This document shows, piece after piece, positions 17,029 through 27,450 of a stretch of 64,000 nucleotides of DNA (its first letter is position 1; each line of letters opens with the position of its first letter). Location: NCBI GenBank assembly GCA_010909165.1, contig MU008167.1, positions 1,488,001 to 1,552,000 on the forward strand. Direction: 5' to 3'. The notes below the pieces were generated by a model. That model was not told where the DNA came from and ran no database searches. It was given only the letters and a program-made list of their open reading frames with translations. The stretch is from Anthoceros angustus. Its lineage: Eukaryota > Plantae > Anthocerotophyta. The translations under genes and the position numbers were made by a program.

Positions 17029-17600
17029 AAATGCAAACCCGAAATTTAGAGTTGGTAGAAAATAAATGGTCCTGTTTAGGCCTCGGTTGCCAGCCTTAGG
17101 GCGCCTCACTTGCAAGCAGATCACAGATGAGTCTGCCAGAAGATTAGATAGCCCTTGCAGTCTGCTCTTCACGGCTCCGGCTTGATGAGTGTGATGAAAT
17201 AAATTCCTGAAACTGTTCTAGACTACAGGTTTGCCGAGGCATGGGGACCTCTGTTCAAAATGTCCCGAACGTTTTCGCAGCTGCATGTGAACCTCCGACA
17301 TCTGTCACTTCGCCCTGAATGTGGAAGGAAGCTGGACTGTGATGCAGCGTTGCATTGCATTATTTGACATGCAGAACCTGAACGTGGCGGGCAGGCTGCA
17401 GCAGGCCTGCATGGATTCTGCTCGATCGAGGATCGGAGAACGGTGGATCGGCCCACCGTGGTGGCCTGTTTCCGCCATCTGGTATCGTCCGCACTTTTAC
17501 GTATTGTATATCCTTTTCCTTTGCTTGAGGACGGTGGGTGACCGTCATGACAACTGTTTTCTTCTTTCCTTAAGAAGGAAGAAGAAAACAGTTGTAATAC

Positions 17601-17673
17601 CACACATTTGGGAACTTCGAACCCGGAATCTCTGATTCAATCGACGAGCGTCTTAGCCATTGGGTTGTGCGGC
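17601..17673 (-). pseudogene. Degenerate tRNA-Arg copy
   Basis: Reverse complement aligns to the tRNA at 19200-19272 (CCCAATGGCTAAGACGCT...AGAGATTCCGGGTTCGA); stems disrupted. Confidence 0.7.
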
Positions 17674-17899
17674 GCGCATTGAAATGTGTTAGAACCAAAT
17701 TACAACCTCGCCTAGGCAGAGGCACCTTCTTCGACAGCTCACGGTTACAGGCACATTGGGGAAAGATCAATTTGATCGCACGGTTGATCGGAATGCTGCA
17801 GGAGAAAGCTTAATAGAATCAAACAGCGATGTTGCTCGTCGGCAGCAAGCCAGGGAATACAGGAACTGCCATATCTGAAGCCAGGGAATACTGTATATT

Positions 17900-17960
17900 G
17901 ATGCATGGTCTCCCCACAAGAGCAGAGGCCGTTAGGGAAATGGTGAACAGTGGGTGCAGC
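17900..17960 (-). pseudogene. DYW-domain C-terminal remnant
   Basis: Minus strand reads VHHFPNGLCSCG. Confidence 0.65.
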
Positions 17961-18190
17961 CGAATTCGATCCTTTCGAAGTTCATCCGAATTCGAAGGTG
18001 GCCCCTCACTGCAGGTGTTGCCGGCGCCGAAGACGACTCCTTCCGATCGAAGTCCTTCCGAAGGTGGTCCCTAGTTTTGCAGTTTTGCAGGTGCACAATG
18101 TTCGGACCCTGGTTGTCAGCCTGGTATGGGACTAGAGAGGAACGAGCACTTTCGGCTGGCTAAAAGAATTGCAAACAATCACTCCGACCA

Positions 18191-18262
18191 AGATCATATT
18201 GGGGATCGAACCCAGAATGTTGATTTCGCAGATCAGCGCCTCATCCATTGGGCCATACGACC
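18191..18262 (-). pseudogene. tRNA-Arg-derived copy with GCG anticodon, probably a pseudogene
   Basis: GGTCGTATGGCCCAATGGATGAGGCGCTGATCTGCGAAATCAACATTCTGGGTTCGATCCCCAATATGATC; 1 nt shorter than the intact copy; mismatches at the ends of the anticodon and T stems. Confidence 0.8.
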
Positions 18263-18589
18263 AAAATGCATACCAATACCCACCTAATGTATTAACCTCT
18301 TACCCAAGTTTCCCTGGTAGTAAAACGTTGCAGCTGTGGTAGCGTACCAACGGTATCATTAGGCTTCCCAATCCCAGACCGACACATCACATGCGCCTTA
18401 ATGCCAGACACACTAGTCACAGTTACAGCCGCATCGCCAAGTCACACATCCAGGTCTTCGACAAGTCACAGTTACAGCCACAATCAGAAACATCAGATTG
18501 ATCGCCAGGTTGTTCAAGTTGATCAAGTTAAGAGATGGGATGTTCAAAATGTGAAAATCGATCTCGTGTGGCACGATCACACTTGAGAT

Positions 18590-24660: not shown

Positions 24661-24689
24661 TATTCGCCGGTACCAGTTCTCCAGTGGAT

Positions 24690-25400
24690 TCAGAGGACTG
24701 GACCTGCCTTGGACCAAGCCCGAAACAAGAAGAGAAGCCGTTTTGAAGATGGCGAACAATGTGGGCGTTTCTCAGGATCATTGCTCTCCAGAAGACCTTG
24801 GAGATGATTTTAGTGCCACTATGGCAAATTGGCAGTCGTTGCACATGCGATCAAAGTAGTCCCTTCTAGACTGCTGAACAGGCCAAAGGCCAATGTTACC
24901 TTAATTCTCAGCATGTCCACGCAAGGCATCCTCCTTTTCCCACTCTAACACTGGCTACAGCAGCAACTCGGTGTGCAGAACATGGCCTTGCTCCTTCAGG
25001 GAAAGATTCAGGCCTCCTCAGTTTGGAATCCAGGCCTGTGCAGGTTTCTGCATGGCACCCTTTTTCTTCTTGTCCACCTCCTCCGACATGCCCAGAATGG
25101 AGCTGCGTACATCCAGGCTCATGGAAAGCATCTATCAAGATGCCGGTAGGTGGGAGCTCGGATGTGGATTATCTCCAAACCTTAAGAAAGTCTGCTGGTG
25201 CTTGCAAGAAGCAATCAAGCTTGGGCGCGGATTGAAGTAAACAGCAGGTCCACACATTCTCTGTGCGGGAAGTCGAAAGAGATGACTGACATCTCCTCCA
25301 AGCTAAGGAGCGTCAACATGTTGTTGGAGGAAGAAGTGGGACATTTGCAACAGGCAGGGTCTCAGGTAAGCAGGATGGCTTGTGCGGACATGCTCACAAA
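24690..25400 (-). pseudogene. E-domain / DYW:KP remnant
   Basis: Minus strand: MQKPAQAWI, EWEKEDALRGHAEN, LAFGL, RMCNDC, HSGTKIISKV..RAMILRNAH.VRHLQNGFSSC. Confidence 0.82.
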
Positions 25401-25694
25401 CTACAATGGGCCTAGGGACTGTTAAACACTTCAGATGGCACAACTTCGCTGGGCTTCTGTCCGTGTGGACCAGGTAGCCATGAATCAGATGCAGCCGAAT
25501 TCGACTCCTTCCGAAATTCTTCCGAAGGTGACCGCTCCCTGGTTTTGCTGAAGATGCACGATCGATGCTCCGATTGCAGAACATGGTCAGAAGTCAGAAC
25601 TGCACTAAAGATGTAGCACTTTGGAAGTGAGAAGAAAATGAGGAACAACAGGATCAGGATAGGCTAACCCAAACTGAGACTGACCCAAACTAAA

Positions 25695-25767
25695 GCATGA
25701 TGCAGGGAATCGAACCCACATTTGTGGATCTGTAGGCCAGAGCCCTTAGCCATCAGGCAATCCGACC
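25695..25767 (-). pseudogene. Degenerate tRNA-Arg copy
   Basis: 73 nt, starts GGTCGG, intact B box GGTTCGATTCC; stems and anticodon loop eroded. Confidence 0.7.
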
Positions 25768-26044
25768 ACATCACACATGCACTCCTAATAATATAAATTT
25801 CTCATTTTCTTCGAGGTGAAAACGTCGGCACCATACAACATGCGACATGACCATGTTTCCGACAGGGCACAGTTCCAGCCCATTCAGGTAGATCAGGTTG
25901 TGGCAAGGTTGATCAGGATGCAGTTTGTGAACGAAGCTTTATATGTTACAAAGAGCGATGCTTCTCGTCGGGAGCAAGCCAGGCAATACGGGAACTGCCA
26001 TATCCGAAGTCGCTCCATTTCAAGCTTGGCCCCACTGAAGAGAC

Positions 26045-27450
26045 CACCAAAGTGGAGCCTTGTGGAGTGTTGAGCAGGCCAAAATCAATGCTAGATTCTC
26101 AGCATGTGCACACAAGGCATCCTCGTTTTCCCACTCTGATCCTGGCTTCAGCACCAACTCAATGTGTGAACATGACCTTGCTCCTTCAGTTGACGATCTG
26201 TAACAGGCTCTTGAGTTTGAAATCTGGATCGTTCCCCGCTTCGCCAACTGTGAATTCGTGCAGATTGCTGTCCACCTCAATCCAGGCCTCTGCAGGTTTC
26301 TTCACGTGAGCACATACACAGCTGCTCGTGTAGGTTCGAGTTCCACTATACGGTCGAAGCACCTCCTTGCTCGATGCACACCCCCGTGGTTCTTGCAGGC
26401 ACTGAGCAAAGTTCTCCACCCAACAATGTCATGCTTAAAACTGGATGGTCGGCTTTGTAGACTTTCTTATGCCCCATCCAAGGGGCCTGACCGGCCAAGA
26501 AGATCCACGATGCAATTGTAGTGTTCAACACTTGGGGAGATGCCGTACTCACTCTCCATGCTTTGAAAGTACTGCAGACCTTCATCCACCAAGCCCACGA
26601 GACTGCATGCATTGAGCAAACACATAAATGCTGCACCATCAGGTTCTTGTCCTTGTTGAAGGATCTCTTGAAAGCATTGAATGGCAATTCTGCAGCGATT
26701 ATGCTGGCCATAGCCATTGACCAAAGCATTCCACGTTACAGCATCTCTAGTAGGCAGCCTATTCAATGCTGGCACATGCTTTCAGAACTGAGGCAAGCGT
26801 AATCTTGTCTGGTTTCACACCACTTCGTTGCATGTCCTCACAAAGATCAACAGCTTCTCTAGCGAGCCCAGATTTTGGCTACCCTGATATAATGGCACCC
26901 CTTGCCACCCCGTCCTTGGCCGCCAACCTGTCGAAACTTTGTGTGCCTCCTCCAACCTTCCACATTTGGCATACATGTGCACCAGAGTGCACCGAATCAC
27001 ATCTGACTCCAGTCCCATTTTAGGGATTCAGGTCCGAATCTGCCTGCCTGCCTGCCTGTGGGTGCTCCGATGCTTCCTTCCACATGCTGTCAGAGTGATC
27101 ACAAATGTAGCCATGCTTGGAGTTACGCCTTGGTCCTACATGCTCTCAAACAGGTCTGGAGCTACTTGACCATCTCCATGCTGAGCATATCCACTAATTC
27201 CACTGAAAAGAATCCCCATTCCACATCAAAAACATCATAAGATCGAGCTTACCTCACAAACCCTATCTCCCACCACTGAGAAGGATGAAGAAGCAGACTC
27301 TCCCCAAAAACCTCTCCAACAACCCGCAATCAAACTGACCACATCCCGAAATCCGGCACCTCACCCAGTCTATCTCCCAGCTTGCCTCGCTCAGGGACAG
27401 CCCGCAAGCTTGATATCCGCCGGTAACATCTCTCCAGTGCATTCAGAAAA
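26045..27450 (-). pseudogene. PLS-PPR-E-DYW:KP pseudogene, the most complete relic
   Basis: HPSQWW motif about 27250-27300; LVHMYAKCGRLEEA; RDAVTWNALVNGY...EHYNCIVDLLGRSG; KKPAEAWIEVDSNLHEFTVGE; EDALCAHAENLAL. Confidence 0.88.

Follow-up and report, generated by a model that had tools for sequence, protein, structure and literature searches.

A 64,000-nucleotide stretch of the hornwort Anthoceros angustus (assembly GCA_010909165.1, contig MU008167.1, positions 1,488,001 to 1,552,000 of the forward strand), called the window in what follows, carries an array in which broken genes for RNA editing factors of the pentatricopeptide repeat (PPR) DYW:KP type alternate with copies of a tRNA-Arg gene. 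The array extends from 16926 to 27459 and fills the interval of about 10.5 kb that separates a jacalin-like gene from an ABC-transporter gene, on the strand opposite to theirs. Its best explanation, to which a probability of about 80% can be given, is that of a decayed local tandem array produced by repeated segmental duplication at the DNA level, in which the tRNA-Arg was carried along with a PPR-DYW:KP gene. On this explanation the tRNA did not organise the duplication but travelled with it as a passenger, or is the last of its cargo to survive.

Mapping of the array was performed by building one profile per block and searching with nhmmer over the whole 64 kb, on both strands. Between 16.9 and 27.5 kb, the blocks of the minus strand follow, from 5′ to 3′, the order (PPR tract)-(KP box or J)-W-U-S-T-L, in which W is the DYW core, U a 3′ flank block, S a spacer, T the tRNA-Arg-like sequence and L a downstream block; individual units miss individual blocks. 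The S block (the spacer GTCACAGTTACAGGCAC of an earlier reading of this DNA made without database searches, hereafter the sequence-only reading; GTGCCTGTAACTGTGAC on the minus strand) is present in seven copies and one partial copy, U (GCAAGCCAGG..GAACTG) in five copies and one partial copy, W in four copies plus one short inverted fragment, and T in six copies, while the junction block X and block J occur twice each. The 18-mer GAAGACGACTCCTTCCGA of the L block was found three times at two mismatches or fewer, against 0.03 occurrences expected by chance, and a wider profile places L after four to five of the tRNAs. All copies lie on the minus strand except the short inverted W fragment (25366-25449, plus strand; nhmmer E=8e-12), which stands between T25 and the next DYW relic. 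Elsewhere in the window no array block was detected, the only signals being a generic PPR similarity to an open reading frame (ORF) at 53.5-57.1 kb and an insignificant U match (E=0.04). The analysis confirmed that the recurrent block order is real and far above chance. The sequence-only reading had described this order with six tRNA positions, and every one of them was recovered, three as ARAGORN/Rfam calls and three as relics detected by a profile, in a consistent order. The units themselves are irregular in length (0.6-2.8 kb); unit 20 (S at 20356-20438) has no tRNA and unit 19 has no U. The features of the array, all on the minus strand, are the following:

16926..17274, minus strand: block J17, the low-coordinate edge of the array; 74% identical to 18604-18953 (378 aligned columns); the final ~35 codons of the plus-strand jacalin-like ORF, which ends at 17028, fall within it.
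17604..17674, minus strand: T17, dead tRNA-Arg relic with a mutated anticodon (nhmmer E=5e-9; under the Rfam threshold; predicted fold without a cloverleaf).
17722..17879, minus strand: S17 (17722-17794) and U17 (17783-17879) (nhmmer E=1e-18 and 2e-22).
~17940, minus strand: DYW C-terminal relic HHFPNGLCSCGE, just upstream of U17 (blastp and Pfam DYW matches on 17748-17981).
18191..18262, minus strand: T18, tRNA-Arg copy and probable pseudogene; anticodon GCG, mismatches in the stems (ARAGORN; Rfam 41.7 bits).
18412..18524, minus strand: S18, partly duplicated internally (nhmmer E=1e-22, with a further partial match at 18412-18434; alignment).
18604..18953, minus strand: J18, the second block J, in which the 3′ end of the jacalin ORF is included as a copy with a broken frame (plus-strand translation '...GQGNHLRADGSELK*...GGLKGIKVAF*').
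19026..19102, minus strand: L19, two tandem subunits of ~40 nucleotides (nt) (nhmmer E=3e-9 and 1e-7; alignment).
19200..19272, minus strand: T19, tRNA-Arg(ACG), the sole functional-looking copy (Rfam 58 bits, every acceptor-stem pair intact).
19371..19453, minus strand: S19, in the unit without U (nhmmer E=4e-24).
19640..20025, minus strand: W19, frame-broken DYW relic with a short PPR fragment at 19962-20025 (nhmmer W E=7e-47, P E=8e-12; translation '...KLALAFGLLNTPQGSTL...'; weak Pfam DYW match).
20356..20596, minus strand: S20 and U20, tRNA lost; weak L remnant at 20163-20184 (nhmmer; in the alignment, the S-to-L distance is ~87 nt shorter than in unit 21).
21230..21342, minus strand: L21, a 39-nt repeat in 2.6 copies (TRF; nhmmer).
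21399..21465, minus strand: T21, tRNA-Arg relic with a degraded 5′ part and a mutated anticodon (nhmmer E=7e-9, model positions 15-67).
21601..21791, minus strand: S21 and U21, U directly after the DYW stop codon (nhmmer; translation '...SLFSCGDRT*', then U).
21805..22258, minus strand: W22, DYW relic with a J-like segment (Pfam DYW_deaminase 47.1 bits at 21805-21966; nhmmer; TRF).
22973..23045, minus strand: T23, tRNA-Arg(ACG), probably dead: G at position 33, mismatched stems (Rfam 36 bits).
23212..23366, minus strand: S23 and U23 (nhmmer E=4e-21 and 5e-17).
23438..24223, minus strand: P23, PPR repeat tract of ~260 codons, frame-broken; the DYW region is deleted between P23 and U23 (tblastn with the window's 1200-aa PPR protein; Pfam PPR).
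24385..24706, minus strand: junction block X, a DYW C-terminus with a different 3′ flank (72.7% identity over 322 nt to the copy at 27195-27459; nhmmer).
24620..25200, minus strand: the most complete DYW:KP relic, with KP box 'QKPAQAWI', core and C-terminus '...NGFSSCFGLGP'; frame-broken, CxxCH changed to CNDCQ (translations; Pfam DYW 23.1 bits; blastp to KP-type proteins).
25497..25565, minus strand: L25 (nhmmer).
25698..25767, minus strand: T25, tRNA-Arg relic with ACA at the anticodon position (nhmmer E=9e-7).
25844..26009, minus strand: S25 and U25 (nhmmer E=1e-18 and 5e-31).
26040..27198, minus strand: the best-preserved PPR-E-DYW:KP pseudogene, with PPR tract, E motifs, KP box 'KKPAEAWIEV' and DYW core; DYW C-terminus deleted, several stops and frameshifts (tblastn; Pfam PPR).
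27195..27459, minus strand: second copy of block X, the high-coordinate edge of the array (sequence comparison; nhmmer).

The PPR-DYW copies of the array are all pseudogenes of the DYW:KP family, without a single working member. The PPR tract survives in just two of the seven units (27198-26308 and 24223-23438 by tblastn, the alignments continuing through the E region to 26308), and Pfam matches to PPR, PPR_2 and PPR_3 are located at 26470-26775, 23321-23620 and 23611-23871. Fragments of DYW_deaminase (PF14432) score 47.1 bits in W22 and 23.1 bits at 24620-24850, with weaker matches at 19723-20427 and 17748-17981. KP boxes, that is KPAxA in the place of the PG box, were read at ~26290 and ~25170 and could not be recovered in the other units; because two relics carry a box of KP type, the DYW:KP assignment holds. 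No copy preserves an intact ORF with both HxE and CxxCH, all of them showing stops, frameshifts or large deletions: CxxCH now reads CNDCQ or CNDCP, and HxE is retained only as H-A-E, in two relics. When representative proteins were searched, the array returned only proteins with ~30-35% identity, in a ranking dominated by repeat number.

Two side observations concern the PPR genes of the window. Inside the DYW relic W22, a perfect 26-nt sequence is present twice in a row (21932-21983), a microduplication of very recent date within a pseudogene that is otherwise old. Far from the array, an uninterrupted ORF of 1200 amino acids (53552-57154, plus strand) encodes a PLS-type PPR protein that ends abruptly within the DYW domain ('...HLCTHSQMLALAGA*'); no continuation was found in any downstream frame and no tRNA lies nearby.

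The position of the tRNA with respect to the editor gene follows from the order DYW stop codon, U, S and tRNA, which places the tRNA ~260-340 nt past the DYW stop codon. The fact that U starts directly at the DYW stop in unit 21/22, together with the C-terminal relic located just before U17, indicates that U and S are the 3′ flank of the editor gene. The amplified unit had previously been described as a tRNA gene followed by a co-oriented editor gene, later shuffled and deleted to different extents. The co-oriented pair and its later shuffling and deletion stand, but the tRNA sits downstream of the editor and not ahead of it. For the same reading L was the 5′ leader of a PPR gene, a proposal that has to be abandoned: L has no similarity to a PPR N-terminus and in no unit does a PPR gene start after it. 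A search by tblastn with the N-terminus of the 1200-aa PPR protein, which covered both the leader and an N-terminal OSB-type PDF motif as identities for L, gave no match in the array.

As for the tRNAs, ARAGORN and Rfam called three tRNA-Arg copies, all on the minus strand (T19, T18 and T23, in decreasing order of Rfam score). A repeat search combined with a profile made from these three uncovered the relics T17, T21 and T25 (profile matches at 17604-17671, 21399-21451 and 25701-25767; E from 5e-9 to 9e-7), which remain under the Rfam threshold and have mutated anticodon positions, so that the six T sequences present ACG twice, GCG once and a mutated anticodon three times. Upstream of T19 the sequence is AT-rich and contains CAA motifs, and the discriminator base is not followed by an encoded CCA; judged from its sequence, T19 is probably still a working gene, and T18 and T23, judged in the same way, are probably dead. 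The six tRNA-Arg copies previously listed therefore exist as sequences, but only T19 looks functional, three are mutated relics and unit 20 has lost its tRNA. With regard to T18, the anticodon GCG is not known from eukaryotic nuclear tRNA sets, and this copy could be annotated automatically as a genuine isoacceptor. Immediately downstream of T23 lies a 43-nt tandem repeat (22583-22926, ~6 copies, 89% identity) with a related 17-nt sub-repeat at 22594-22647.

Among T18, T19 and T23 identity is 76-86%, whereas their flanks are 58-65% identical (two of the three pairs give p ~1e-5, the third 0.085). The better preservation of these three copies indicates that selection held the tRNA for some time after duplication in those units. 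This finding also bears on an alternative according to which the locus is a small tRNA-Arg gene cluster, in which amplification or retention concerned the tRNA unit and its flanking sequence, the PPR-DYW pieces being debris trapped in it. Besides the clear conservation of the three tRNAs, such a cluster would fit the units between 17.6 and 19.5 kb, which measure just 0.6-1.0 kb and consist of U-S-T-L nearly without PPR, and it would resemble the plant tRNA-gene clusters that arise by duplication of whole units with their flanks and are highly variable (PMC13437025, PMC10701932). Nevertheless, only one copy looks functional and three are not recognised by Rfam. The tRNA density, three recognisable copies within 4.9 kb, or five within 5.4 kb and six within 8.2 kb when the relics are included, lies below the published threshold of at least five tRNA genes within 5 kb (PMC13437025). 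Moreover, U begins exactly at the DYW stop, so the flanks of the unit are the flanks of a PPR gene. Altogether a tRNA cluster is an unlikely description of the locus, and one that overlaps with the tandem duplication of a PPR-DYW:KP gene and its tRNA more than it competes with it.

Two observations do weigh against the duplication of gene and tRNA as a whole. The short units of the 17.6-19.5 kb region, made of U-S-T-L with little or no PPR, are such that later rounds may have amplified the tRNA module instead, and U/S is the best-aligned part across the seven units, for which no reason was found beyond the small number of indels.

The age of the array can be read from the divergence of its copies, which differ by 15-55%. 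Mean pairwise identity is 76% for U, 74% for W, 68% for S and 62% for T, the coding relics being about as conserved as the flanks. For the S-to-L segment, maximum likelihood gave an unresolved star whose terminal branches measure 0.17-0.59 substitutions per site. The star shape together with the long branches indicates that the copies are old and that no recent births are visible. The idea of an active birth-and-death nursery of RNA editors is contradicted by this age and by the death of all the editor genes. The sequence-only reading had named an ordinary decayed tandem duplication, with no consistent module order, as the outcome that would speak against its proposals; the decayed tandem duplication fits the array, but its module order is consistent.

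The mode of amplification is indicated by several independent pairs of blocks that are spaced by 2.6-2.8 kb and by the junction 'DYW C-terminus + X + PPR tract', which appears twice (24706-24385 and 27459-27195). The spacings and the doubled junction indicate a tandem period of higher order, with two editor genes in it at the outset. At the other edge of the array, the last ~35 codons of the jacalin-like ORF (16654-17028, plus strand; Pfam Jacalin 27.9 bits on 16654-17025) belong to block J, and the 3′ end of this gene is duplicated, with frameshifts, 1.7 kb further in (18604-18740). Since J carries the 3′ end of a neighbour gene, at least one duplication simply copied a stretch of chromosome. 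The jacalin ORF 3′ end runs antisense to block J, and J elsewhere adjoins DYW relics.

Repeated insertion beside PPR genes of a tRNA-derived short interspersed nuclear element (SINE) or another retroelement could also produce a tRNA-related core with a conserved flanking 'body'. In such an element the tRNA would be expected at the 5′ end; here it lies in the middle of the module, preceded by ~250 nt that are conserved as well. Neither a poly(A) or simple-repeat tail nor an encoded CCA or a terminal inverted repeat was found in the array, although target-site duplications were not specifically searched for. The copies are co-oriented and confined to a single 10 kb stretch of the 64-kb window, and the flanks are the 3′ flanks of PPR genes. 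The lack of retroposition marks and the location of the tRNA inside the repeat unit favour tandem duplication at the DNA level over a SINE or retrocopy, a reading that is largely refuted within the window and has hardly any probability left. Unit 20 was also considered as an 'empty site' that would imply tRNA insertion, and this was rejected, since an internal deletion, perhaps with a remnant of the T arm, fits the alignment better.

Rearrangement breakpoints do not fall at the tRNAs: unit 26 lost the DYW C-terminus, unit 23 the DYW region, unit 19 its U block and unit 20 its tRNA, and these events thus give no evidence for the earlier suggestion that the tRNAs acted as recombination anchors. 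The history that may be proposed for the array starts with an ancestral segment that would have contained one or two intronless PPR-DYW:KP genes together with a nuclear tRNA-Arg(ACG) gene in the same orientation, ~260-340 nt beyond the stop of one of these genes. Unequal crossing-over would have amplified this segment about seven times, each duplication copying together the gene, its 3′ flank (U and S), the tRNA and L. Joint copying of these parts accounts for the recurrence of the block order. Deletions, microduplications and one small inversion would then have cut the units to 0.6-2.8 kb; the editor genes are all dead now, and the tRNA would be the sole part that selection kept in some units.

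A different alternative is that the tRNA and the PPR gene are functionally coupled, either in a dicistronic transcript, with the tRNA serving as an RNase P/Z processing signal or as a read-through promoter, or in a locus producing small interfering RNAs (siRNAs) against PPR genes. The co-oriented tRNA stands a few hundred nt from the DYW stop, within the ~1 kb over which dicistronic tRNA-mRNA transcripts have been described in vascular plants (PMC8166872). In addition, no run of at least four T is present within ~60 nt downstream of T19, which shows only TTCTTTATT. By contrast, a T4 run occurs ~30 nt after both T18 and T23, and the coupling would have nothing to regulate, every PPR copy being a pseudogene. 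In a moss and a liverwort, the non-vascular plants examined, no dicistronic tRNA-mRNA was detected (PMC8166872). Neither a conserved RNA structure nor an Rfam family other than tRNA was found in the array. Six PPR-DYW loci of other organisms, genomic or transcript and four of them of KP type, showed no tRNA in their available flanks and no U, S, L, J or X, while a DNA profile of the DYW core, used as positive control, matched five of the six. Functional coupling is thus very unlikely, and the roles that had been proposed for the locus, which included read-through transcripts and PPR-targeting siRNAs, are without support as far as the letters of the DNA can tell. Very unlikely too is a version in which, in this hornwort lineage, the gene unit once included as a functioning component a tRNA-Arg directly behind its DYW:KP gene, for example as a 3′-end processing signal or an RNA polymerase III boundary for the editor transcript, the pairing being kept at other, intact loci and the array being its fossil.

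Other identities for U and S were considered and rejected. The idea of a small-RNA gene came from a TATA-like TATATAAAG, from a sequence weakly resembling the upstream sequence element (USE) of plant small nuclear RNA (snRNA) genes and from UGAUG/CUGA-like motifs; no Rfam match and no consensus structure were obtained, the latter from the well-aligned U/S segment. The spacing between the USE-like and TATA-like sequences at U/S does not fit that of plant snRNA promoters. More generally, no Rfam family other than tRNA, microRNA families included, reached threshold in the array, and the S core had no match among metagenome contigs. S as a second DYW C-terminus, on the basis of the translation 'ECACNCD', was discarded since no DYW homology exists upstream in that frame, and a special constraint on U/S, which the alignment profile had suggested, was set aside because the block-wise identities are no higher than that of the DYW pseudogene core.

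The neighbourhood of the array presents features of its own. A C-terminal nucleotide-binding region of an ABC transporter is nearly the same in the ORFs 31923-33464 and 49579-50520, both on the plus strand, the second seeming to be truncated and altered, which suggests a partial segmental duplication of an ABCB-type gene ~17.6 kb away. In a protein search, no homologues were found for the first-exon ORF of the ABC-transporter gene. Upstream of the jacalin-like ORF, the region 13000-16600 is extremely purine-rich, with GC skew reaching 0.76 and AT skew 0.86, and is made up of tandem units of ~190-200 nt that encode Glu/Lys/Arg/Gly-rich repeats.

The locus provides a clear example of how, in a PPR-rich genome of hornwort type, tandem duplication takes neighbouring sequence with it, in this case a tRNA gene and the last part of a lectin gene. 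It also carries two cautions: tandem PPR 'arrays' of this genome can consist of pseudogenes throughout, and decayed copies such as the one with the GCG anticodon inflate tRNA counts. Alone it matters little, and it would become interesting only if tRNA-Arg were recurrently linked to intact DYW:KP genes across the genome.

Comparison with known systems places the array close to, and yet apart from, several of them. tRNA-derived SINEs share with it a tRNA-like sequence repeated together with adjacent conserved sequence, whereas here the tRNA does not form the 5′ end of the unit, a tail and a terminal inverted repeat are both lacking, and no copy exists outside the array in the 64 kb. Dicistronic tRNA-mRNA genes likewise have a co-oriented tRNA a few hundred nt from a coding gene, but the known cases are expressed, intact genes (PMC8166872) and the coding partner is dead here in every unit. 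The plant tRNA-gene (tDNA) clusters known from the Pro, Ser-Tyr-Tyr and Cys tDNAs of Arabidopsis, which arise by segmental duplication of whole units, are similar in having one isotype, one orientation and co-duplicated flanks that vary and decay (PMC13437025, PMC10701932, PMC12308677). In contrast to them, the present array is much smaller and older, with three recognisable copies and three relics over 8.2 kb, and its irregular units of 0.6-2.8 kb are composed of sequence flanking a protein-coding gene; the available portion of one source (PMC13437025) does not list Arg with the isotypes that form clusters. Finally, in a published hornwort genome, where the PLS-PPR family is described as very large and tandem arrays as abundant, PLS-class PPR genes make up ~7.9% of genes and ~10% of genes are in tandem clusters (PMC7027989). 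The PLS-PPR tandem arrays of hornworts have in common with the present locus the intronless PPR-E-DYW genes, the KP-type box and the local head-to-tail amplification, and no description of a tRNA inside a PPR array was found in the literature. What distinguishes this locus from those arrays is that all copies are fragments and each unit has a tRNA-Arg gene or relic in the 3′ flank. In conclusion, the presence of a tRNA within a PPR array concerns the detail of a single locus and does not amount to a new type of system.

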